In this document: positions 1,910-50,575 of the stretch, one piece after another
Layout of the letters: every line of letters begins with the position of its first letter
How positions within the stretch are numbered: position 1 is the stretch's first letter
NCBI RefSeq assembly: GCF_030028105.1
Contig: NC_092377.1
Location: 3,911,079-3,975,078, forward strand
DNA length: 64,000 nucleotides
Source: Mobula birostris
Taxonomy: Eukaryota
Reading direction: 5' to 3'
The notes under the pieces: model-generated
The model's database searches: none
Seen by the model: the letters and a program-made list of their open reading frames with translations, nothing else
Told to the model about the DNA's origin: nothing
Made by a program: the position numbers and the translations under genes

Positions 1910-2019
1910 CTACAACACTTGTTCAGCCTTGAAACCAATGGAGGTGATGAACAGCACTGGGTCTTTTAGACACTCAGCTTTACCAGGACTGTGAGGATGT
2001 CTGTGCATGGCTGAGCGAC
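1910..2019 (-). CDS. Exon 8 (probable terminal coding exon)
   Basis: Acceptor ccttttactgaatcag|GT is phase-1 compatible and reads RSAMHRHPHSPGKAECLKDPVLFITSIGFKAEQVL to TAG at 1912-1910. An internal donor G|GTAAAG at 1984 could instead make this a 36-bp internal exon. Confidence 0.45.
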
Positions 2020-2206
2020 CTGATTCAGTAAAAGGTGTGAATTCACACCCTGGTCCAATTGGTGATCAGACTGAGCTGCCGCTGACCCATCACCACACGG
2101 GGCTCATTGCTCACTGGCTGTTCCTGTATAAAGACTTCTCCAGTCTCACCACTTCCACAGCAGTTGATATGGTTTAGCCGACCTGTCCAAAGATGTTGCA
2201 ACGTAC

Positions 2207-2249
2207 CTTGGAGATGACCGTAGATGGACTGAGTGGGACATTGCAGAGC
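2207..2249 (-). CDS. Exon 7: cytoplasmic mini-exon, second half of the ITAM
   Basis: Acceptor tttctgttttctctactag|GC, donor CAAG|GTACGT, 43 bp, phase 0-1. Encodes ALQCPTQSIYGHLQ; 90-bp intron from exon 6. Confidence 0.8.
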
Positions 2250-2339
2250 CTAGTAGAGAAAACAGAAATGGTGTGAACAACAGCTTGACAGCTCGTGCTG
2301 TGCGAAAAGCTTCAATGTTCCAGAGGTGACCTTCCTTAC

Positions 2340-2381
2340 CATGTAGGTGTTGTTTGAATCGAGCTGGTGACCTCCTGAACC
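2340..2381 (-). CDS. Exon 6: cytoplasmic mini-exon, first half of the ITAM
   Basis: Acceptor tgttctgttgtag|GG, donor ATG|GTAAGG, 42 bp, phase 0-0. Encodes GSGGHQLDSNNTYM. Confidence 0.8.
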
Positions 2382-2990: not shown

Positions 2991-3229
2991 TTCAATTCAA
3001 TATCAGAGAATGTAAACAGCATACAACCTGAAACTCGTACTCTTCACAGAGATCCACATAACAGAAAAAACCCAAAGAATGAATGACAGAACATTAGAAC
3101 GCCATTTCCTTCACTCCCTCCAAACTTAAAAAACAGCAAAAGCATCAACCTCCCCTCCCCCACTTACTCTTACAAGGGTGCAAACACCCACTACCCCACT
3201 ACACGCTGTGCAAGTAACAGCAGAACCCC

Positions 3230-4090
3230 ACTGGGGGGGAGAAAGTGGGGGAAAGATAGAAAGCCAGGAGAGAACGTGGGGAGAGAGAGAAGGGGAGAGA
3301 TAGAGAAGGGACAGAGAAAGGGGGCAGTGAAAGGGGGCAGAGAGAGAAAGGGAGAGGAAACGGGAGAGAGAGAAGGGGGAGAGGAAAGGGAAGAGGAAGG
3401 GGGAGAGGAAAGGGGAGAGAAAGGGGGAGAGAGAGAAGGGGAGAGAGAGAAAGGGGGAGAGAGAGAAAGGGGAGGAAACAGGAGAGAGAGAAGGGGGAGA
3501 GGAAAGGGGAGAGGAAGGGGGAGAGGAAAGGGGAGAGAAAGGGGGAGAGAGAGAAGGGGGAGAGAGAGAAAGGGGAGAGAGAGAAAGGGGGAGAGAAAGT
3601 GGGAGAGNNNNNNNNNNNNNNNNNNNNNNNNNNNNNNNNNNNNNNNNNNNNNNNNNNNNNNNNNNNNNNNNNNNNNNNNNNNNNNNNNNNNNNNNNNNNN
3701 NNNNNNNNNNNNNNNNNNNNNNNNNNNNNNNNNNNNNNNNNNNNNNNNNNNNNNNNNNNNNNNNNNNNNNNNNNNNNNNNNNNNNNNNNNNNNNNNNNNN
3801 NNNNGGTAGAGAGGGGGGAGAGAGGGGAGGGAGAGAGGGGGGAGAGGATGGGGAGAGAGAGGGGGAGAGAGAGGGGGGAGAGATGGGGAGACATGGGGGA
3901 GAGAAAGGGGGAGAGATGGGGGAGAGAGAGGGGGATAGATGGGGGAGAGAGAGGGGGAACAGATGGGGAGAGATAGGGGAGAGAGAGGGGGATAGATGGG
4001 GGAGAGAGAGGGGGGACAGATGGGGAGAGATGGGGAGAGAGAGGGGGAGAGAAAGGGGGGAGAGAAAGGGAGGAGAAAAGGAGGGGGAAA
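3230..4090. repeat. Polypurine (G/A) low-complexity tandem array spanning an assembly gap (N 3608-3804)
   Basis: GGGGAGAGAGAAA/GGGGAGAGGAAA-type units left of the gap and GGGAGAGAGAGG/GGGATAGATG-type units right of it. Confidence 0.95.
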
Positions 4091-7020
4091 CATAGAAACA
4101 TAGAAAGCCTGCAGCACAATGTAGGCCCTTCAGACCACAAGGCTGTGCCAAACATATCCTTACTATAGAAATTACCTCCGGTTTCTCAGAGTCTTCCATT
4201 TTACTAAGCCCCATGTACCTATCCAGGAGTCTCTTAAAAGACCCCATCATATCTTCCTCCACCACCGTTGCCGGCAGCCCATTCCCTACACTCACCACTT
4301 CCTGTGTGAAAAAACTTACCCCTGACATCTCCTATGTACGTACTTCCAAGCAGCTTAAAACTGTGCCCTCCCGTTCTAGCCATTTCAGCCCTGGGAAAAA
4401 GCCTCAGAATTAAAGAAAACCCCAGATAAGTGTGAGGTGGTTTATTTTGGTAGGTCAAATATGATGGCAGAGTATAGTGTTAATGGTACGACTCTTGGCA
4501 GTGTGGAGGATCAGAGGGATCTTGGAGTCCGAGTCCATAAGACACGATCATCTACACGATCAATGCCTCTCATCATCTTATACACCTCTATCAGGTCACC
4601 TCTCATCCTCCGTTGCTCCAAGGAGAAAAGGGCAAGCTCACGCAACCTATTCTCATAAGACATGCTCCCCAATCCAGGCAACATCCTTGTAAATCTCCTT
4701 TGCACCCTTTCTATGGTTTCCATGTTCTTCCATTAGTGAGGCAACCAGAATTGAGCACAATACTCCAAGTAGGGTCTGACCAGGGTCCTATATAGCTGTA
4801 ACATTACGTCTCGGCTCCTGAACTGAATCCCATGATTGATGAAGGCCAATGCACCGTATGCCTTCTTCACCACAGAGTCAACCTGCACAGCAGCTTTGAG
4901 TGTCCTATGGACTCGGACTCCAAGATCCCTCTGATCCTCCACACTGCCAAGAGTCGTACCATTAACACTATACTCTGCCATCATATTTGACCTACCAAAA
5001 TAAACCACCTCACACTTATCTGGATTGAACTCCATCTGCCACTTCTCAGCCCCATTTTGCATCCTATCAATGTCCCGCTATAACGTTCCTCATCCAGGTC
5101 AGTTATAAAACTCACGAAGAGTAGGGGTCCCAAAACAGGTCCCTGAGCCACATCTCTGGTCACTGACCTTCATGTAGAATATAACCTGTCCACAACCAAT
5201 CTTTGCCTTCAGGAGGCAATTGAATTCTGGATGCACAAAGCAATGTCCCTTTGGATCCCATGCCTTCTTACTTTCTCAATAATCGTTGAAAAGGGTACCT
5301 ATCAAATGCTTTGCTGAAATCCATATACACTACATCAACTGCTCTACCCTCATCAATGTGTTTAGTCACAACCTTAAAAAATTCAATCAGGCTCATAAGG
5401 CACTACCTGCCTTTGATAAAGCTATGCTGACTATTCCTAATCATATTATGCCTCTCCAAATGTCCATAAATCCTGCCTCTCAGGATCTTCTCCAACAACT
5501 TACCAACCACTGAAGTAAGACTCACTGGTCTATAATTTCCGGGGCTATTTCTACTCCCTTTGTTGAATAAGGGAACAACATTGACAACCTTGCAATCCTC
5601 CAGAACCTCTTCCGTCCTCATTGATGATGCAAAGATCATCGCCAGAGGCTCAGGAATCTCCTCCCTTGCCTCCTACAGTGGCCTGGGGTACATCTCATCC
5701 GGTCCCAGTGACTTATCCAACTTGATGCTTTCCAAAAGCTCCAGCAGATCCTCTTTCTTTATATCTACATGCTCAAGCTTTTCAGTCTGCTGTAAGTCAA
5801 CCCTACAATCACCAAGATTCTTTCTTGTAGTGAATACTGAAGCAAAGTACTTATTAAGTGCCTCTGCTATCTCCTCTGGTTCCATACACACTTTTCCACT
5901 CTCACACTTGATTGGTCCTATTCTCTCATGTCTTATCCTCCTGCTCTTCATTTACTTGCAGAATGCCGTGGGGTTTTCTTTAATTCTGTCCGCCAAGGCC
6001 TTCTCATAACCCTTCTGGCTCTCTTAATTTCATTCTTAAGCTCCTTGCTAGCCTTATAACCTTCTAGATCTCTATCGTCAACTAGCTTTTTGAACCTCTC
6101 GTAAGCTTTTCTTTTCTTCTTGACAAGTTTTGCAACTAGTACCCTACCATTCTTTCCCTGTCTCATTGGAATGTACCTATGCATATCTCCATGCAAATAT
6201 CCCATGAACATTTGCCACATTTCTGTCATACATTTCCCTGAGAACATCTGTTCCCAATTTATGCTTCCAAGTTCCTGGTTGATAGCCTCATATTTCCCTT
6301 TACTCCAATTAAACACTTTCCTAACTTGTCTGTTCCTATCGCTCTCCAATGCTATGGTAAAGGAGATAGAATTACGATCACTATCTCCAAAATAGTCATA
6401 GTCATAGTCATACTTTATTGATCCCGGGGGAAATTAGTTTTCATTACAGTTGCACCATAAATAATAAATAGTAATAAAACCATAAATAGTTAAATAGTAA
6501 TATGGAAAATATGTAAAAAATGCTCTCTCACTGACAGACCTGACACCTGACCAGTTTAATTTCCCAATACCAGATCAAGCACAGCCTCTCCTCTTGGAGC
6601 CTTATCGACGTATTCTGTCAAGAAACCTTCCTGAACACACCTAACAAACTTTATGCCATCTAAAGCCTTTGCTTTTGGGAGATGCCAATCAATATTTGGG
6701 AAATGAAAATTTCCCACCATGACAACCCTGTTATTATTACACCTTTCCAGAATCTGCTTCACTGTCTGATCCTCAATGACCCTGTTACTATTGGGTGGTC
6801 TATCAAAAACACCCAGTAGAGTTATTGACCCCTTCCCGTTCCTAACTTCCACCCACAGAGACTCCTGTGTCCCTCCATGTCTTCCTCCTTTTCTTCATGT
6901 GTGACACTATCTCTGATCAGCAGTCCCATGTCTCCACCTCTTTTGCCTCCCTCCCTGTCCTTTCTGATACATCTATAGCCTGGCACTCCATGTAACCCTT
7001 CCTGCCTCTGAGCCTTCCAA
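4090..7020 (-). mobile_element. CR1 LINE, ORF2 (APE plus RT) pseudogene with (TTCTATG)n tail
   Basis: APE fragment (6556-6852), PGNYRPVSLTS and RT C-terminal motifs in the ORF track; tail at 4090-4107. Interrupted by a short Rex1 3' end at about 6394-6507. Confidence 0.9.
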
Positions 7021-7576: not shown

Positions 7577-7650
7577 CGGGACATCCCTGGCCATGAAAAC
7601 ATTTTCATAATCTGCCCCTGGGCTCTGGTGATCAGTTTCTGTGGGTGGGT
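7577..7650 (-). CDS. Exon 5: cytoplasmic exon containing YENV
   Basis: Acceptor actctatttcacag|AC, donor CCG|GTGAGT, 74 bp, phase 1-0. Encodes PPTETDHQSPGADYENVFMARDVP and lies 166 bp from the TM exon. Confidence 0.85.
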
Positions 7651-7816
7651 CTGTGAAATAGAGTATAAATTATCAGTAACAGCCGTCTCCGAGCTGTGAG
7701 TCCCACATTGCTGTCACAACACAACGACGGGCTCTTTCACAATCAGTCCCCGACCTTCACATTTTAATAACTCCACACAACAATCGGATCAGAATGAACC
7801 ATTTAGTCACACGTAC

Positions 7817-7936
7817 GGGACGGGTGGTTTCTAAACGCTCTGCGACTGATGAGGAAAATGCCTCCAGTGACAGCGAGAACTCCCAGCACGACAGCCAGAA
7901 TGAGCCAGGCCAGGTACGATGGGGCTTGGGACATCT
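7817..7936 (-). CDS. Exon 4: short stalk, transmembrane helix and basic stop-transfer
   Basis: Acceptor tttccgttcctcaaacag|AG, donor C|GTACGT, 120 bp, phase 1-1. Encodes MSQAPSYLAWLILAVVLGVLAVTGGIFLISRRAFRNHPS. This frame is not in the ORF track. Confidence 0.88.
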
Positions 7937-16881: not shown

Positions 16882-17249
16882 GGGGAACATGATGGGGAAT
16901 TCCTTCATTCAGAGGTTGGTGAGAGTGTGGAATGAAATGCCAGCAGATTTCAACATTTGCGAGAAATTTGGATAGTTACATGGATGAAGGGCATATGAAG
17001 GGCTATATTCGGGTGCAGACTGATGGGGTTAGATGGGCCTACAGGGCGACTCCTGTTTCCAATGTTTTGTGATTCTATGACTAATCTAGAACCCATCCTA
17101 CCCCAATCATTCCCTCTTCTCCCCCTCACATTCAGCAGAAGATACAAAATCTCAAGGCCATGTTCCACCTGGCTCCACATCCCATTACCAATCCCTTCAA
17201 TGGGCATCTTAAATAATGAAGCTGAACCATTGATCTCACAGTCTCCCTC

Positions 17250-17455
17250 TTCATGGTCCTTACCACTTCTGGCCCACCCGCACAGCTCTCTCTCAGTAAC
17301 TTCATGGTCCTTACAGCTTCTGGCCCACCCGCACAGCTCTCTCTCAGTAACTTCATGGTCCTTACAGCTTCTGGCCCACCTGCACAGCTCTCTCTCAGTA
17401 ACTTCATGGTCCTTACAGCTTCTGGCCCACCTGCACAGCTCTCTCTCAGTAACTT
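17250..17455. repeat. Minisatellite, 4 copies of a 51-bp unit
   Basis: Unit TTCATGGTCCTTACAGCTTCTGGCCCACC(C/T)GCACAGCTCTCTCTCAGTAAC starts at 17250, 17301, 17352 and 17403. Confidence 0.95.
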
Positions 17456-17949
17456 GTTGAACTGGTTTATTATTGTCACATCTACTGAGACACAGTGAAT
17501 TAGTTGCCTTACACACTGTTCATACAGATTATTCATTACATCAGTGTATTGAGGTAGTTCCACTGAAAATAACGACAGAGTGCAGAATAAAATGTTACAG
17601 TTACAGAGAGGGTGCAGTGCAGGTAGACAACATGGTGCAAGGTCATAGCAAGGTGGATTATGAGGCCAAGAGTCTATTGAATCATACTGAGACTGTTGAC
17701 TAGTCTTATAACAGTTGGAAAGAAGTTGTCCTTCAGCCTGGAGGCATTTGCTTTCAGGGTTTTATATCTCCTGCCTGATGGAAAGTGTGAGAATCGGGTG
17801 ATGGGTGCGTTGAACACGCTGACTGTGGTGCTGGTCAAGACAGTTACACTTGGGACATTTGAGAGACTCTGAGATAGACAGATGGATGAATGAAAACAGT
17901 GAGCTATGTGGGACAGAAGTTTTTGATTAATCTCAGTGTAGGTTATGAG

Positions 17950-18968: not shown

Positions 18969-19313
18969 TGGTTACGATGAGCTGGGTGCTGTTCCCGTCG
19001 ATGTCTCCCCACACTCTGCAGTAATAGACGGCAGAATCACTGTGCACCACGTCTGTGACTGTCAGGGTGAAGCTGCTGTTGGATGAGTCTCTGTAGGGCA
19101 GGAACCTCCCAGTGAAACCCCGTCCCCACTCTGTGCTGCCTCCTGCCCTGTGTGTTAAAACCCACTCCATGTCCTGCCCGGGTAGTTTCCGATACCAGTG
19201 GACATCGGTGTCTTCCAGCCTGGCGTTTCTCAAGGTACACCATAACCACGCCGTGTGACCCTCAGTGACACGCTGTATGCTCGGGGACTGGATAAGGACA
19301 GGAATGTCTGCAC
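18969..19313 (-). CDS. Exon 3: Ig V-set domain 2 with germline-joined, degenerate J-like strand
   Basis: Acceptor ttctcccttacag|GT, donor ACCA|GTGAGT, 345 bp, phase 1-1. Has WLWC, VHWYRKLPGQ, GRF, DSAVYYC and DGNSTQLIVT. Confidence 0.93.
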
Positions 19314-28342: not shown

Positions 28343-29625
28343 ATGGGAAAGCTGTTGGAAAAGATTCTTAGAGATAGGATCTCTGGGCATTTAGAGAATC
28401 ATGGTCTGATCAGGGACAGTCAGCATGGCTTTGTGAAGGGCAGATCGTGTCTAACGAGCCCGATAGAGTTCTTTGAGGAGGTGACCAGGCATATAGATGA
28501 GGGTAGTGCAGTGGATGTGATCTATATGGATTTTAGTAAGGCATTTGACAAGGTTCCACATGGTAGACTTATTCAGAAAGTTAGAAGGCATGGGATCCAG
28601 GGAAATTTGGCCAGGTGGATTCAGAATTGGCTTGCCTGCAGAAGGCAGAGGGTGGTGGTGGAGGGAGTACATTCAGTTTGGAGGATTGTGGCTAGTGGTG
28701 TCCCACAAGGATCTGTTCTGGGACTTCTACTTTTCGTGATTTTTATTAACGACCTGAATGTGGGGGTAGAAGGGTGGGTTAGCAAGTTTGCAGACGACAC
28801 AAAGATTGGTGGTGTTGTAGATAGTGTAGAGGATTGTCAAAGATTGCAGAGAGACATTGATAGGATGCAGAGGTGGGCTGAGAAGTGGCAGATGGAGTTC
28901 AACCTGGAGAAGTGTGAGGTGGTACACTTTGGAAGGACAAACTCCAAGGCAGAGTACAAAGTAAATGGCAGGATACTTGGTAGTGTAGAGGAGCAGAGGG
29001 ATCTGGGGGTACATGTCCACAGATCCCTGAAAGTTGCCTCACAGGTGGATAGGGTAGTTAAGAAAGCTTTTGGGGTGTTAGCTTTCATAAGTCGAGGGAT
29101 AGACTTTAAGAGTTGCGATGTAATGATGCAGCTCTATAAAACTCTGGTTAGGCCACACTTGGAGTACTGTGTCCAGTTCTGATCACCTCATTATAGGAAG
29201 GATGTGGAAGCATTGGAAAGGGTACAGAGGATATTTACCAGGATGCTGCCTGGTTTAAGAGTATGCATTATGATCAGAGATTAAGGGAGCTAGGGCTTTA
29301 CTCTTTGGAGAGAAGCAGGATGAGAGGAGACATGATAGAGGTGTACAAGATAATAAGAGGAATAGATAGAGTGGATAACTAGCGCCTCTTCCCCAGGGCA
29401 CCACTGCTCAATACAAGAGGACATGGCTTTAAGGTAAGGGGTGGGAAGTTCAAGGGGGATATTAGAGGAAGGTTTTTTACTCAGAGAGTGGTTGGTGTGT
29501 GGAATGCACTGCCTGAGTCAGTGGTGGAGGCAGATACACTAGTGAAGTTTAAGAGACTACTGGACAGGTATATGGAGGAGTTTAAAGTGGGGGCTTATAT
29601 GGGAGGCAGGGTTTGAGGGTCGGCA
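28343..29625 (+). mobile_element. 5'-truncated young CR1 RT copy nested in an antisense CR1 3' end
   Basis: 279-aa open RT segment (YMDFSKAFDKVPH, FADDTK) and TTCTATG tail at about 29607-29620. The host CR1 continues on both sides. Confidence 0.9.
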
Positions 29626-37554: not shown

Positions 37555-40540
37555 ACTTAATACTTTATTGTCGCCAAACAATTGATACTAGAACGTACAA
37601 TCATCACAGCGATATTTGATTCTTCGCTTCCTGCTCCCTGGATTACAAATATTAAATATTAAAAATAGTAAAAATTAGTAAATATTACAAATTTAAATTA
37701 TAAATCATAAATTGAAAATAGTAAAATGGAAAGTAAGGTAGTTCAAAAAAACCGAGAGGCAGGTCCGGATATTTGGAGGGTACGGCCCAGATCCGGGTCA
37801 GGATCCGTTCAGCAGTCTTATCACAGTTGGAAAGAAGCTGTTCCCAAATCTGGCCATACGAGTCTTCAAGCTCCTGAGCCTTCTCTCGGACAAAAAGTGT
37901 GCTGGCTGGGTGGGTCGTGTCCTTGATTATCCTGGCAGCACTGCTCCGACAGTGTGCGGTGTAAAGTGAGTCCACGGACGGAAGATTGGTTTGTGTGATG
38001 TGCTGCACCGTGTTCACGATATTCTGCAGCTTCTTTCGGTCTTGGACAGGACAACTTCCATACCAGGTTGTGATGCACCCTAGAAGAGTGCTTTCTACGG
38101 TGCATCTATAAAAATTAGTGACGGTTTTAGGGGACAGGCCAAATTTCTTTAGTTTTCTCAGGAAGAAAAGGCACTGGTAGGCCTTTTTGGCAGTGAACTC
38201 TGCTTGGTTGGACCAAGTCAGGTCGCTTGTGATATTAACCCCGAGGAACTTAAAACTTTTGACCTGTTCCACTTGCGCACCACCGATGTAAATTGGGTCG
38301 TGCTGTTTGCTACTCCTTCAGAGGTCAACAACCAATTCCTTCGTCTTGCTGACATTGAGGGATAGGTTATTGTCTTTGCACCATGCCACCAGGTTCTTAA
38401 TTTCCTCTCTCTACTCAAACTCAATATTACCCGAGATACGGTCTACAATTGTTGTGTCATCAGCAAACTTATATATTGAGTTCGATGGAAACTTGGCTAT
38501 ACAATCATGGGTGTACAGTGAGTACGGCAGGGGGCTGAGTACACAGCCTTGTGGGGCACCGTTGCTCAGAGTGATTGTAGAGGAGAGCTTGTCCCCTATT
38601 AATGCAGCCTGGGTCCTGTCTGAGAGGAAGTTGAAGATCCAGCTGCAAATCTGAGTGCTAAGGCCCAGGTTCCGGAGCTTAGGAATCAGTTTATTTGGAA
38701 TGGTGGTATTAAAGGCAGAGCTGTAGTCAATGAAAAGGAGACTTACATATGCGTCTTTATTTTCCAGGTGCTCTAAGGAGGAATGTAGGGCCAGAGAGAT
38801 GGCATCTGCCGTTAACCTGTTGCTCAGGTAGGCGAATTGCAAAGCGTCGAGGTTGACTGGTAGGCTGTGGTTGATGTGTGCCATAACCAATCTCTCGAAG
38901 AACTTCATAGCATTTGATGTCAGGGCCACAGGTCGATAGTCATTCAGGCATGCCACCTTGCTCTTATTCGGCACTGGGATTATCATTGCCTTCTTAAAAC
39001 ACGAGGGGATCTTAGACTGAAGCAAGGAGCAGTTAAAGATGTCAGCAAACACTCCAGCTAGCTCGCTTGCACAGGCCCGGAGAACCCGTCCCGGGACGCC
39101 ATCTGGGCCTGTCGCCTTCCTAGGATTTATCTTCAGGAAGGCCCTTCTAACGTCCTCTTCGGTGACGATGATTCTCGATGCCACCAGGTCCGGTTCATCC
39201 GGAGGGAGTGGGATGCTCCACTTCTCTTCGAATCTTGCGTAGAATACATCAAGTTCGTCAGGAAGAGAAGTGCCACAGTTATTGATATTCCCAGCCTTTT
39301 CTTTGCGACCAGTGATCTCATTTAGACCCTGACATTGTCTACAGGCATCCCTCTGGTTAGCCTGGGCTTCCAACTTGGCTCGATATTGGCTCGATATTGG
39401 CTCTTGGCTCCCTTAATGGCTTTCTGGAGTTCACGCCTGGATTCCGTGTAGCGACTGGTATCCCCGGACTTAAAAGCCACAGCTCTAGCCTTCAAAAGGG
39501 ACTTGACCTCATAATTCATCCAAGGTTTCCGGTTAGGGAATACCCGGATTGTCTTGCGAGACACACAGTCCTCCGTGCATTTCCAAATAAAGTCTGTGAC
39601 AGCTGAGGCATACTCATCGAGGTTAGCTGCCGAGTCCTTGAATAATAACCAGTCCACCGATTCAAAGCAGTCACGGAGGACCTCATCCGTTTCCTCCGTC
39701 CAACGCGACACCACTTTTGACACCGTGACTTCCTGCTTCAGTTTCTGTTTGTAAGCCGGGAGGAGGAGTACGGCCTGATGGTCCAATTTTCTGAAGTGTA
39801 GTCGTGGGACGGAACGGTAGGCATCCTTGACTGCTGTGTGGCAGTGGTAAAGTATATTCGGGCCTCTAGTGGGGCAGGAGACATGTTGGTATAACTTTGG
39901 CAGCACCTTTCTGAGGTTGGCCAGGTTAAAGTCCCCGGATGTAATGAGCAAAGTCTCCGGATACCTGGTCTCAAGTTCACTGATGTTGGCATACAGTATG
40001 TTCACAGCACACTCCACATCCGCCTGGGGGGGGAATGTAGACCGCTGTCAGTATGACCGAGGTGAATTCCCGTGGCAGATAGTAGGGACGACACTTCATC
40101 GACAGGTGTTCCAGGTCCGGGCTGCAGGAGCTTGTCAGTGCCACTGTGTCCGAGCACCACACAGTGTTGATCAGAAGGCAGACACCACCTCCCCTAGTCT
40201 TGCCCGAAGACGCCGTGCGGTCCATCCGATGGATCGAAAATCCCTCCGGTCGGATAGCGCAGTCGGGGGTGGCAGGGGAGAGCCAGGTCTCAGTGAAACA
40301 GAATACACAGCAGTTCTGCATCTCCCTGCACTTGGTGAGTCTCCCTTTAAGATCATCCACCTTGTTCTCTAAGGCTTGCACATTAGCTAGTAGGATGGTG
40401 GACATAGAGACCCCGAAGCCCCTCAGTTTCAATCTGACCAGCAGCCCAGCTCTTTTCCCACGCTTCCCACATATGAAGTTGAACAAGAGATATGGGAAAA
40501 GTGGATTGTGTTCAAACTACAGCCATGTTGCTGCTGAACA
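37555..40540 (-). mobile_element. Near full-length Rex1/Babar LINE (APE plus RT), frameshifted
   Basis: ORFs 39977-40486, 39322-40017, 38411-39373 and 37685-38272 carry [34 protein letters not shown] and FADDTT. Confidence 0.92.
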
Positions 40541-41522: not shown

Positions 41523-41885
41523 TGGTCACATTCAGCTGGGTTCCCTTTCCAAAGACCGACCCCCAAATGCCACAGATGTAAAGTTTAGGGTCGGTGACCG
41601 TCACGTTGCTGGTGGTCAGTGAGTAGCTGTTAGTGGCGACATTCCTGGAAAGCTGAAATCGATCGGAGAAGCCCCGTGATCTGTAAACTTGGCCATTACG
41701 GGTAAGACCAAGTATTCTTTGATGGTCTTTCAGTTTACTGTGTGATTCGTACCAGTGTACATCATATTTATCCACAGTGTAATCCACGTTGTCACTCTGC
41801 AGAACACACTGTATCTGCACCGTTCCACCTTCACGCACCTTCACAACTCCTGGCGATTGGATCAGGACTGGCTTTGCATTTACGC
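41523..41885 (-). CDS. Exon 2: Ig V-set domain 1 with germline-joined J-like strand
   Basis: Acceptor ctgcccacag|GC, donor ACCA|GTGAGT, 363 bp, phase 1-1. Has B-strand Cys (QIQC), VHWY, DRF, D-x-x-x-Y-x-C (DPKLYIC) and FGKGTQLNVT. Confidence 0.93.
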
Positions 41886-45799: not shown

Positions 45800-48700
45800 G
45801 TTCTTAAAACACTGCTCGGGGAGAAGGGTCTGCACTGCGCAGGCGCGTGATGTAGCGTGCCAAGGTTTAAAAAGAGAAATTTTCAACGGTTCTTGTTTCA
45901 GTCGAAGCAAGCAGCTGAGAAGGAGTGAAGAAATCGGGTAGAAAAAGTCATTTTTTTTAAACATTGCTTGGGGAGAAGGGTCTGCACTGCGCAGGCGCGT
46001 GACGTAACGCCCCAAGGTTTAAAAGCAGACCACCATATACAGCGGCCATCGTCGGAGTGGACTGAGTCAGAGTGGGACAGCTTTGATCAACAGGCTTCGG
46101 CGAGAACAGGCAGAGGCCAGGGTAGGTTCCGGTAAGTTTTTTCTTCAGATTGTCCAGCGTAGAGAGAATGCCAGGCAGGATGTTGGAATGCTCCTCTTGC
46201 AGGATGTGGGAAGTCAGGGAGCCCTCCAGTGTCCCTGACAACGACACCTGCAAGAAGTGCATCCAGCTGCAGCTCCTGACAAACCGCGTTAGGGAACTGG
46301 AACAGGAGCTGGATGACCTGCGGATCATTCGGGAGAATGAGGAGATTATAGATCGTGGCTACAGGGAGGTAGTTACGCCAAAGGAGCAGAGGACAGGAAA
46401 TTGGGTCACTGTCAGGCGAGGGAAGGGGAAAGGGCAGGCAGAGCAGGGTTCCCCTGTGGCCATTCCTCTCAACAACAAGCATACCGCATTGTAACAACAA
46501 GTATACCGCAAGTATTACCTGGGACAAGCTGCAGTAGCCGGATCTCTGGCACCGAGTCTGGCTCTGCAGTGCAGAAGGGGAGAGCGGTAGTGATAGGGGA
46601 CTCGATAGTTAGAGGTGCAGATAGGAGGTTCTGTGGTCGTGACAGAGAATCCAGGATGGTTTGTTGCCTCCCAGGTGCCAGGGTCAAGGATGTCTCTGAT
46701 CGATTGCATGACATTCTGAAGTGGGAGGGTGACCAGCCAGATGTCGTGGTGCACATCGGTACCAATGACATAGCAAGGAAGAGTGAGGAGGTCCTGGACA
46801 GTGAGTATAGAGAGCTTGGTAGGAAGTTGAAAAGCAGGACCTCAAGGGTGGTAATCTCAGGATTGCTACCTGTGCTAGGTGCCAATGAGGGTAGGAATAG
46901 GATGCTCTGGAGGAGGAACAAGTGGCTGAGGAACCGGTGTAGGGGGCAGGGTTTCAGATTTCAGGATCATTGGGACCTCTTCTGGGGCAGGTGGGACCTG
47001 TACAAGAGAGACAGGTTACACTTGAACTACAGGGGGACCAATATCCTTTCAGGGAGGTTTGTTAGTGCTATTGGGGAGGCTTTAAACTAGATTTGCAGAG
47101 GGATGGGAACCAGAGTGCCAGAGCTGACAGTGTGGCTGGGGTGAAAATAAATGATGTTGAAAGTTTAAGCAAATCTGCTGATAGGAAAGTTGTGAGCTGT
47201 GGTAAAAATCTTCTGAGGTGTATATATTTCAATGCTAGGAGTATTGCGGGGAAGGCGGATGAGTTGAGGGCGTGGATTGACACGTGGAATTATGATGTTA
47301 TAGCAATTAGTGAAACTTGGCTACAGGAGGGGCAGGACTGGCAGCTTAATATTCCAGGGTTCCGATGTTTCAGATGTGATCAAGGCAGAGGAATGAAAGG
47401 TGGGGGAGTAGCATTATTTGTTAGGGAAAATATTACAGCAGTGCTCAGGCAGGACAGATTAGAGGGCTTGTCTACTGAGTCCTTGTGGGTGGAGCTGAGA
47501 AACAGGAAAGGTATGGCCACATTAGTGGGATTGTATTACAGACCACCCAATAGTCAACGAGACTTGGAAGAGCAAATCTGCAGAGAGACAGCAGGCAACT
47601 GCAGGAAACATAAAGTTGTGGTGGTAGGGGATTTTAATTTTCCATACATTGATTGGGTCTCCCATACTGTTAGGGGTCTAGATGGTTTAGGGTTTGTAAA
47701 ATGTGTTCAGGAAAGTTTTCTAAATCAATATATAGAGGGAACAACTAGAAGGGATGCAATATTGGATCTCCTGTTAGGAAACGAGTTAGGGCAAGTGACG
47801 GAAGTCTGTGTAGGGGAGCGCTTTGGTTCCAGTGATCATAACACCATTAGTTTCAATTTGATCATGAACAAGGATAGATCTGGTCCTAGGGTTGAGGTTC
47901 TGAACTGGAAGAAGGCCAAATTTGAAGAAATGAGAAAGGATCTAAAAAGCGTGGATTGGGACAGGTTGTTCTCTGGCAAAGATGTGATTGGTAGGTGGGA
48001 AGCCTTCAAAGGGGAAATTTTGAGAGTGCAGAGTTTGTATGTTCCTGTCAGGATTAAAGGCAAATTGAATAGGAATAAGGAACCTTGGTTCTCAAGGGAT
48101 ATTGCAACTCTGATAAAGAAGAAGAGGGAGTTGTATGAAATGTATAGGAAACAGGGAGTAAATAAGGTGCTTGAGGAGTATAAGAAGTGCAAGAAAATAC
48201 TTAAGAAAGAAATCAGGAGGGCTAAAAGAAGACATGAGGTTGCCTTGGCAGTCAAATTGAAGGATAATCCAAAGAACTTTTACAAGTATATTAAGAGCAA
48301 AAGGATTGTAAGGGATAAAATTGGTCCTCTTGAAGATCAGAGTGGTCGGCTATGTGCAGAACCATAGGAAATGGGGGAGATCTTAAATAGGTTTTTTGCA
48401 TCTGTATTTACTAAGAAAACTAGCATGAAATCTATGGAATTAAGGGAAACAAGTAGTGAGATCATAGAAACTGTACAGATTGAAAAGGAGGAGGTGCTTG
48501 CTGTCTTGAGGAAAATTAAAGTGGATAAATCCCCGGGACCTGACAGAGTGTTCCCTCGGACCTTGAAGGAGACTAGTGTTGAAATTGCGGGGGCCCTAGC
48601 AGAAATATTTAAAATGTCGCTGTCTACGGGTGAGGTGCCGGAGGATTGGAGAGTGGTTCATGTTGTTCCGTTGTTTAAAAAAGGATCGTAAAGTAATCCG

Positions 48701-50090
48701 GGAAATTATAGGCCGGTGAGTTTAACGTCTGTAGTAGGTAAGTATTGGAGGGAGTACTAAGAGACAGAATCTACAAGCATTTGAATATACAGGGACTTAG
48801 GGAGAGTCAACATGGCTTAGTGCATGGTAGGTCATGTTTGACCAATCTATTGGAGTTTTTCGAGGAGGTTCCCAGGAAAGTGGATGAAGGGAAGGCAGTG
48901 GATATTGTCTACATGGATTTCAGTAAGGCCTTTGACAAGGTCCCGCATGGGAGGTTAGTTAGGAAAATTCAGTCGCTAGGTATACATGGAGAGGTGGTAA
49001 ATTGGATTAGACATTGGCTCAATGGAAGAAGCCAAAGAGTGGTGGTAGAGAATTGCTTCTCTGAGTGGAGGCCTGTGACTAGTGGTGTGCCACAGGGATC
49101 AGTGCTGGGTCCATTGTTATTTGTCATCTATATCAATGATCTGGATGATAATGTGGTAAATTGGATCAGCAAATTTGCTGATGATACAAAGATTGGAGGT
49201 GTAGTAGACAGTGAGGAAGTTTTCAGAGCCTGCAGAGGGACTTGGACCAGCTGGAAAAATGGGCTGAAAAATGGCAGATGGAGTTTAATACAGACAAGTG
49301 TGAGGTATTGCACGTTGGAAGGACAAACCAACGTAGAACATACAGGGTTAATGATAAGGCACTGAGGAGTGCAGTAGAACAGAGGGATCTGGTAATACAG
49401 ATACAAAATTCCCTAAAAGTGGTGTCACAAGTAGATAGGGTCGTAAAGAGAGCTTTTGGTACATTGGCCTTCATTAATCAAAGTATTGAGTATAAGAGCT
49501 GGAATGTTATGATGAGGTTGTTTAAGGCATTGGTGAGGCCGAATCTGGAGTATTGTGTTCAGTTTTGGTCACCAAATTACAGGAAGGATATAAATAAGGT
49601 TGAAAGAGTGCAGAGAAGGTTTACAAGGATGTTGCCAGGACTTGAGAAACTCAGTTACAGAGAAAGGTTGAATAGGTTAGGACTTTATTCCCTGGAGCGT
49701 AGAAGAATGAGGGGTGATTTGATAGAGGTATATAAAATTATGATGGGTATAGATAGAGTGAATGCAAGCAGGCTTTTTCCACTGAGGCAAGGGGAGAAAA
49801 AAAACAGACATGGGTTAAGGGTGAGGGGGGAAAAGTTTAAAGGGAACATGAGTGGGGGCTTCTTCACACAGAGAGTGGTGGGAGTATGAAATGAGCTGCC
49901 AGATGAGGTGGTAAATGCGGGTTCTTTTTTAACATTTAAGAATAAGTTGGACAGATACATGGATGGGAGATGTATGGAGGGATATGGTCCGTGTGCAGGT
50001 CAGTGGGACTAGGTAGAAAATGGTTCGGCACAGCCAAGAAGGGCCAAAAGGCTTGTTTCTGTGCTGTAGTTTCTATGGTTTCTATGCCAC
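45800..50090 (+). mobile_element. Full-length CR1 LINE with few lesions, in intron 1 and antisense to the receptor gene
   Basis: 5'UTR; ORF1 from 46150 (CSSC...CKKC zinc motif, coiled coil, SGNH esterase GDS/GTND/DRLH); ORF2 from 47093 (APE plus RT) with nonsense codons at 48365 and 48689 and frameshifts; TTTCTATG tail at about 50070-50086. Confidence 0.95.
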
Positions 50091-50523: not shown

Positions 50524-50575
50524 CCAGAGAAACACAGATGAAAAGGGTCACTGCAGGAAGGCTTTTATTCCTCAT
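50524..50575 (-). CDS. Exon 1: signal peptide (leader)
   Basis: ATG at 50575 with A at -3, encoding MRNKSLPAVTLFICVSL plus G, then the donor G|GTAAGT (phase 1). Joined to the V1 exon it gives the signal peptide ...ICVSLGVNA/KPVL, the usual split-leader layout of Ig-type genes. Confidence 0.8.

Follow-up and report, generated by a model that had tools for sequence, protein, structure and literature searches.

Two very short exons in a transposon-laden stretch of manta-type ray DNA raise the question of whether they encode a true ITAM divided by an intron or a chance combination of tyrosines and leucines and, if the former, what kind of receptor carries it. The window examined in the present study comprises 64,000 nt of Mobula birostris contig NC_092377.1 (all positions below are those of the window). 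A reading of its letters had proposed that exon 6 ends in N-T-Y-M and exon 7 begins with A-L-Q-C-P-T-Q-S-I-Y-G-H-L across a 90-bp phase-0 intron, giving a YxxL-x7-YxxL motif. Read directly on the minus strand, exactly this arrangement is present, and the spliced exons 6 and 7 yield ...LDSNNTYM|ALQCPTQSIYGHLQ, that is, NxxYxxL-x7-YxxL. We consider it probable that the two are coding exons of an eight-exon manta-type ray receptor gene (leader, two V-J domains, uncharged transmembrane (TM) helix and four-exon tail) with a canonical receptor-borne ITAM, acting as the activating partner in a paired family.

The split ITAM and its gene model

The classical ITAM (Reth motif) consensus is D/E/N-x-x-Y-x-x-L/I-x(6-8)-Y-x-x-L/I (PMC4536121), and the exon 6/7 peptide N-N-T-Y-M-A-L-(QCPTQSI)-Y-G-H-L conforms to it, with N at -3 and a spacer of seven residues. 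Two exons code for the motif, with a phase-0 boundary inside the first YxxL, intron 6 lying between the M and A of YMAL. An exon boundary inside the first YxxL is also described for classical ITAMs (PMC4536121, PMC2110893, PMC2832619, PMC5112662), and in CEACAM-gene ITAMs the first YxxL is cut by a phase-0 intron (PMC5112662). The table of Xenopus Ceacams prints ...PYM | GLQ..., the same Yx|xL point as in exons 6 and 7 (Additional file 1, PMC5112662). The proposal that the intron occupies the classic ITAM position thus agrees with the literature, which places the split in the first YxxL, and with Xenopus Ceacam, which has it at Yx|xL. In the minus-strand reading, exon 6 is bordered by the acceptor tgtgttctgttgtag|GGTTCA and the donor TACATG|gtaagg, and exon 7 by the acceptor tgttttctctactag|GCTCTG and the donor TCCAAG|gtacgt; both exons were also matched by tblastn with P0004 and P0005.

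Upstream of these exons, a leader, two V-set domains, a stalk/TM exon and a first cytoplasmic exon were located on the same strand (Table 1). The TM helix YLAWLILAVVLGVLAVTGGIFLI is hydrophobic and 23 residues long, none of them charged, and is followed by an RRAFR stop-transfer. The ITAM lies in the cytoplasmic tail, 3' of the TM exon and in frame via cyt1, which places the YxN motif DYENV (YENV) upstream of it; DYEN is invariant in rays and sharks. Intron phases after the seven exons are 1, 1, 1, 1, 0, 0 and 1, all borders are AG/GT, and leader-V1-V2-TM-cyt1-exon 6-exon 7 splices without a stop, V1 to exon 7 giving 328 aa. This spliced V1-exon 7 product matches Mobula P0004 with 89% identity over 252 aa and aligns colinearly along its whole length with the shark proteins P0019 and P0018, while V2 is 85-92% identical to proteins of rays (Mobula, Hemitrygon, Hypanus), the group in which the proteins of the window have their nearest matches. 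The original prediction took the ITAM as support for the whole gene model, and the fit of the phases and the colinearity with annotated homologues sustain that view. For annotators, this provides a safe rule for two ~42-nt exons that gene finders easily miss among transposons.

Table 1 Exons of the receptor gene, the intron that divides its ITAM, and a candidate last exon, in window coordinates
Feature	Position	Strand	Length (nt)	Phase	Content and support
Exon 1, leader	50524..50575	minus		1 (end)	MRNKSLPAVTLFICVSL-G; donor G|gtaagt; parallels Mobula leader MFAAIITTLTLSVCAVG
Exon 2, V1	41523..41885	minus			V-J type V-set (...KLYICGIWGSVFGKGTQLNVT); Pfam V-set E 3.4e-11; tblastn to P0004, P0002
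Exon 3, V2	18969..19313	minus			Germline-joined V-J type V-set (...DSAVYYCRVWGDIDGNSTQLIVT); Pfam V-set E 1.9e-12
Exon 4, stalk/TM	7817..7936	minus	120	1-1	KMSQAPS-YLAWLILAVVLGVLAVTGGIFLI-SRRAFRNHPS; hydropathy scan, alignment to P0004
Exon 5 (cyt1)	7577..7650	minus	74	1-0	HPPTETDHQSPGADYENVFMARDVP; carries conserved YxN (Grb2-type) motif
Exon 6 (cyt2)	2340..2381	minus	42	0-0	GSGGHQLDSNNTYM; first ITAM half, ends after Y-M
Intron 6	2250..2339	minus	90	0	GT..AG; splits first YxxL as Yx|xL
Exon 7 (cyt3)	2207..2249	minus	43	0-1	ALQCPTQSIYGHLQ plus one base; second ITAM half
Candidate last exon	1912..2123	minus			Acceptor AG 2125-2124, 83 nt after exon 7; G|GA ACA GCC AGT GAG CAA TGA (GTASEQ, stop), then UTR

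Conservation, transcript-like contigs and the 3' end

A YxxL-x7-YxxL may also arise by chance wherever intronic or repeat DNA offers convenient GT/AG sites, and the bare motif is as common in the window as in shuffled sequence: the six-frame translation contains five matches to the loose motif Yxx[LI]-x6-8-Yxx[LI] versus 7.05 in shuffles, and the bare motif is therefore not significant. A chance origin is nevertheless next to impossible here and is refuted by the conservation of the motif across rays and sharks together with the transcript junction; matching phases and annotated homologues with the same tail also speak against it. It is context, conservation and transcript junctions, not the motif alone, that make the ITAM real, in four independent lines: the gene model, the conservation, the transcript-like contigs and an isoform from another gene copy.

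The same tail occurs in NCBI-annotated proteins of Mobula, Hypanus, Hemitrygon, Heptranchias, Heterodontus, Pristiophorus and Chiloscyllium. Both ITAM tyrosines, on whose conservation the original prediction had staked itself, are retained in the tails read from these seven genera (three rays and four sharks). An alignment of tails from three rays and two sharks has invariant D-Y-E-N, D-S, T-Y-M-A-L-Q, Q-S-I-Y and L, which belong to the YxN motif and to the core of the ITAM. Neither of the tyrosines and neither +3 Leu/Ile residue varies in this alignment, and all four are kept also in P0019, P0020 and P0023, including the sawshark protein (P0019) and the bamboo-shark protein (P0023), the latter with YTTL-x7-YSNL. 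A Mobula isoform from another gene copy (P0021) ends in ...NNTYM|LTINHRLAAEPQRV, exon 7 being skipped and exon 6 joined to the last exon; LTINHRLAAEPQRV is that last exon (ADNKPPSRS and stop in P0004) read in phase 0. In that copy too, Y-M is therefore followed directly by an exon border.

Several annotated 'isoforms', namely P0006 and P0007 of Hemitrygon, P0021 of Mobula and P0010 of Heptranchias, are frame-shifted or exon-skipped products; the types seen among them are cyt1 donor read-through, exon 7 skipping and TM exon skipping. These products are helpful as exon-border markers and are unlikely to be functional proteins.

The exact 2249|2340 junction, which the original prediction had made a test of the exon pair, is carried by contigs of three runs from two studies (X4 and X6 from one, X1 from the other). 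It skips 90 bases with CT..AC on the plus strand, the cut being shifted by +1 (GT..AG), and no base differences are listed for exons 6 or 7 in these contigs. Depth arithmetic indicates that the contigs span ~42-44 positions on each side of the junction, and therefore they also end at 2207 and 2381, the outer borders of the exons. Words of 7577-7935 (51% exonic) are present in X4, X6 and X1 at fractions of 0.55, 0.55 and 0.42, respectively, and words of 1900-2700 (10.6% exonic) at 0.11, 0.09 and 0.25; none of the three runs has depth on unique intron sequence. These word fractions and the absence of intron depth point to RNA as the source of the three runs. The junction validates the splice pattern but does not single out this copy, since the contigs end on either side of exons 6-7.

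At the GT donor that closes exon 7 the phase is 1, and in homologues a further exon supplies ADNKPPSxS or GNKQTADx. The X1, X4 and X6 contigs cover 1912-2169, 1912-2082 and 1912-2102, respectively, that of X1 with 1 mismatch in 258 over 1912-2169, and every one ends sharply at 1912. A GT is found on the minus strand at 1910-1909, just past this point, and the 1912-2169 block could be a last exon with a spliced 3' UTR or could reflect a structural difference between assemblies. Beyond 1912 the three contigs continue into sequence absent from the window (236 more bases in X1). Among the joints listed for the contigs, none connects 2207 with 2123. The usual ray ending, ADNKPPSxS and stop, was not found as a translated pattern in the 2.2 kb downstream of exon 7, and nucleotide strings deduced from two overlapping frames of Hemitrygon and Mobula proteins, when aligned downstream, scored no better than background. 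A by-eye likeness to the ray ending near 2182-2090 was dropped, its alignment scores being at background.

As the usual ray last exon was not found, the 3' end of this copy could be damaged, and a family ITAM that is real might here sit in a decaying or silent copy, the contigs deriving from near-identical neighbouring genes. Apart from the missing ending, such a reading would accommodate the length of the gene (~48 kb, stretched by transposon insertions), the assembly gap in intron 5, the fact that among the protein matches listed none is marked as the window's own, and the breaks in the contigs at both ends of exons 6-7, which are expected if paralogues share these exons. We nevertheless regard it as unlikely, given good splice sites in seven intact exons, a stop-free reading of 328 aa, contigs that match exons 6 and 7 without listed differences, the near-perfect X1 match downstream and the presence of TM-cyt1 words in the same runs.

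A paired receptor family and the possible origin of its tail

The V domains combine a canonical Cys...YYC pair with a J-like motif (FGxGT/GNGT), and V2 matches antibody V domains in a PDB sequence search. Antibodies dominate these matches, which accordingly do not place the ectodomain family. Among the Atlas clusters that bear a name, the nearest include 'natural cytotoxicity triggering receptor 3-like' at 0.95, and other neighbours are CD7, CD226 and BTLA, all to be taken as leads only. Two Mobula proteins, P0003 and P0004, are ~91% identical in V2, a similarity that stops at ...QLIVT; thereafter the ITAM tail follows in P0004, and in P0003 a tail of the ITIM/ITSM type, ...MFYADIQF...TEYAIIKR. 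Further ITIM/ITSM-tailed members are P0012, P0014 and P0016. Such near-identical ectodomains with opposite tails make the family of the window gene a paired activating/inhibitory one. The window itself contains neither tail exons of the ITIM/ITSM type nor a third exon of the V type. Given that the family already has ITIM/ITSM-tailed siblings, the window tail would be the activating counterpart. The gene exemplifies a family, large in sharks and rays, of antibody-like V-J receptors that do not rearrange and that have an ITAM built into the receptor, intron-split as in classical ITAMs; signalling through it is predicted for the family.

In the mechanism that we propose, ligand-driven clustering would allow a Src-family kinase to phosphorylate the YMAL and YGHL tyrosines, a Syk/ZAP-70-type kinase would dock by its tandem SH2 domains on the doubly phosphorylated motif and the cell would be switched on. 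The upstream YENV, when phosphorylated, would recruit Grb2-type SH2 domains, and siblings with nearly identical V domains and ITIM/ITSM tails would be the inhibitory counterparts in the paired family. Phosphorylation, recruitment of Syk and Grb2, and the activating outcome are inferred. S-I-Y-G-H-L, around the second tyrosine, agrees also with the ITIM consensus (I/L/V/S)xYxx(L/V), and S-I-Y-x-x-L is invariant in the tail alignment; partial phosphorylation of SIYGHL could accordingly recruit SHP-1/2 and make the motif an inhibitory ITAM or a dual switch. With dedicated ITIM/ITSM-tailed siblings carrying the same V domains already in the family, such a role seems very improbable, and we retain the activating reading.

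The classical ITAM subunits (FcR-gamma, DAP12, CD3 chains, CD79a/b and TCR-zeta) have a tiny or single-Ig ectodomain and act as small adaptors, an acidic residue in their TM pairing with a separate chain that binds the ligand. In the window gene the ITAM is instead on the ligand-binding chain, the TM is uncharged rather than acidic and the ectodomain comprises two V domains; the sequence likeness to the classical subunits is shown for the motif only. Human Fc-gamma-RIIA (CD32A) is a ligand-binding Ig receptor with an activation motif in its own tail and an ITIM-tailed sibling, Fc-gamma-RIIB. The window gene likewise pairs an own-tail ITAM with ITIM-tailed siblings, but Fc-gamma-RIIA differs in its non-canonical 12-residue spacer, C2-type Ig domains and unrelated tail. 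NKp30/NCR3-like receptors and teleost NITRs share with the window family non-rearranging V-J type V domains and the existence of activating and inhibitory forms. NKp30 and activating NITRs signal via a charged TM and a separate ITAM adaptor, whereas the window family has a built-in ITAM and two or three tandem V domains.

The closest resemblance of the tail lies elsewhere. When an ITAM-tail profile was searched against 1.84 billion representatives, it reached beyond the family members to a horn-shark 'pregnancy-specific glycoprotein 22-like' protein (P0024, Heterodontus francisci, XP_067874551; E 1.1e-5). This protein has three CEACAM-N-like domains, the N-terminal one matching CEA, CEACAM1 and CEACAM6 in PDB. 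Its tail, ...AAYENF...DKNSTYMDLKLEDQSIYHDLRK, is 39% identical to a sawshark V-J receptor tail (E 2e-10) and follows the pattern YENx...STYM.L...DQSIY..L, as in the V-J receptor family; the ectodomains of P0024 and P0019 are unrelated (E 2.9). When the tails of P0017 and P0024 were used in word-based protein searches, only shark proteins or only the query itself came back.

Among described genes, the tail is of the same kind as those of Xenopus group-2 Ceacams (Ceacam368, 351 and 387) and mammalian CEACAM3-type tails, in that a receptor-borne ITAM is attached to an Ig receptor with an uncharged TM. A Xenopus group-2 Ceacam ITAM tail reads, for example, ...IYDNIPNTAV | AHPAKEEGPYM | GLQRPSQDTYSELKL and stop, with phases 1-0-0 (PMC5112662). 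Shared with the Ceacam tails are the cytoplasmic exon phases (1) Cyt1 (0) Cyt2 (0) Cyt3, the YxN in Cyt1, a phase-0 intron at the Yx|xL point of the first YxxL, and overall a pattern resembling Xenopus group-2 tails of YxN followed by YM|xLQxPxQxxYxxL. In the core, Ceacam ...PYM|GLQRPSQDTYSELK and window ...TYM|ALQRPDQSIYSDLK are identical at 11/16 positions. A shuffle test of the Xtr_Ceacam368 tail against elasmobranch tails (3000 shuffles, Y/N/L motif residues fixed) gave similarity beyond the motif residues at p <= 0.0003 (P0011) to 0.004, with 0.0037 for the window tail. Compared directly with Xenopus Ceacam368, the horn-shark CEACAM-like tail was not significant (p 0.05-0.2), and the apparent link between these two runs through the V-J family tails. 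The ITIM/ITSM sibling tails resemble those of Xenopus Ceacam301 and opossum CEACAM1 (p <= 0.0003-0.01), a pattern that is common in other ITIM families too.

The tail apart, the CEACAMs differ. The window family has canonical disulphide-bonded V domains with J-like FGxGT/GNGT versus cysteine-less N and C2 domains in CEACAMs, and ectodomain similarity is lacking, as judged from CEACAM-like P0024 against P0019 (E 2.9). Elasmobranch tails add a phase-1 intron and a short last exon, whereas Xenopus Cyt3 runs into the stop; the coding sequence of the window gene accordingly does not end in Cyt3 just after the ITAM. Genes that mark the CEACAM locus (LIPE, CD79A, BCL3 and others) were not seen in the ORF/open-frame lists of the window, which hold mostly transposon-type frames. 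The tail is probably homologous to, and probably works like, a CEACAM-type ITAM cassette, but we do not file the gene as a CEACAM because its ectodomain differs and an extra intron follows the ITAM.

In human CEACAM3, which belongs to the family with the closest known tail type, the ITAM-like motif signals largely without Syk. The window motif might by analogy serve as an endocytic motif, driving uptake or phagocytosis via Vav, Nck, PI3K or Grb2 on single phosphotyrosines, or YxxPhi/AP-2 sorting, rather than docking Syk. The shared CEACAM exon phases, YxN and YM|xLQxPxQxxYxxL core would suit this use, as would the same tail on a CEACAM-like shark protein, and the Kammerer/Zimmermann papers term such motifs endocytic. 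The CEACAM3 motif is, however, deviant (YxxL-x7-YxxM), whereas that of the window is a full consensus with the canonical 7-residue spacer, and both YxxL units are retained in all ray and shark tails read. We therefore hold a CEACAM3-like use to be improbable and favour docking of a Syk/ZAP-70-type kinase.

The original prediction further held that the cassette had been acquired by exon shuffling, and for this the evidence is suggestive: a CEACAM-like protein of a shark joins the same tail to an unrelated ectodomain, and the ITAM- and ITIM-tailed Mobula proteins share ~91% of V2 and then diverge completely. The presence of one tail on V-J receptors and on a CEACAM-like shark protein suggests a cassette shared or exchanged between families. 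More tentatively, and with considerable doubt, we raise the possibility that the ITAM and ITIM/ITSM cassettes of CEACAMs and of the V-J family are the same ancient modules, at least ~450 million years old, which either were moved by exon shuffling in early jawed vertebrates or are shared because the cysteine-less CEACAM N domain descends from such a V-J receptor. Were the latter true, CEACAMs would have their missing canonical-V relative in the V-J family of elasmobranchs. The split ITAM of the window gene reveals no new signalling principle, the intron-split design itself being known; what is new is the likeness of the tail to Xenopus group-2 Ceacam tails and its presence on a horn-shark CEACAM/PSG-like protein. 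Together these make up a concrete case, open to testing, in which immune receptor families at the base of the jawed vertebrates would share signalling-tail modules.

Genomic surroundings

The window is vertebrate DNA rich in LINE-type transposons. Introns of the gene contain LINE-type elements or fragments at 46400-49900 (+), 28343-29182 (+), 38411-40486 (-) and 4400-6900 (-), with long reverse-transcriptase-like and endonuclease-like frames, as identified from translations alone; in the copy at ~46.4-49.9 kb the frames are long and almost uninterrupted (424, 206 and 215 aa). Intron 5 includes a ~900-nt CT-rich low-complexity tract (3200-4100, ctctcccc variants) around a 197-N gap (3608-3804), and this tract gives long spurious ORFs on both strands. 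A tandem repeat at 16950-17563, whose minus-strand ORFs contain the peptide unit VTERELCRWARSCKDHE four times over, probably represents an intron 3 minisatellite. Finally, the segments 2626-2730 and 946-1365 are very abundant in transcript-like contigs (summed depth ~1e5 and 1e4, respectively), with many joints between 1266-1307 and 2670-2677, which suggests that an expressed interspersed repeat has copies on either side of the ITAM exons.
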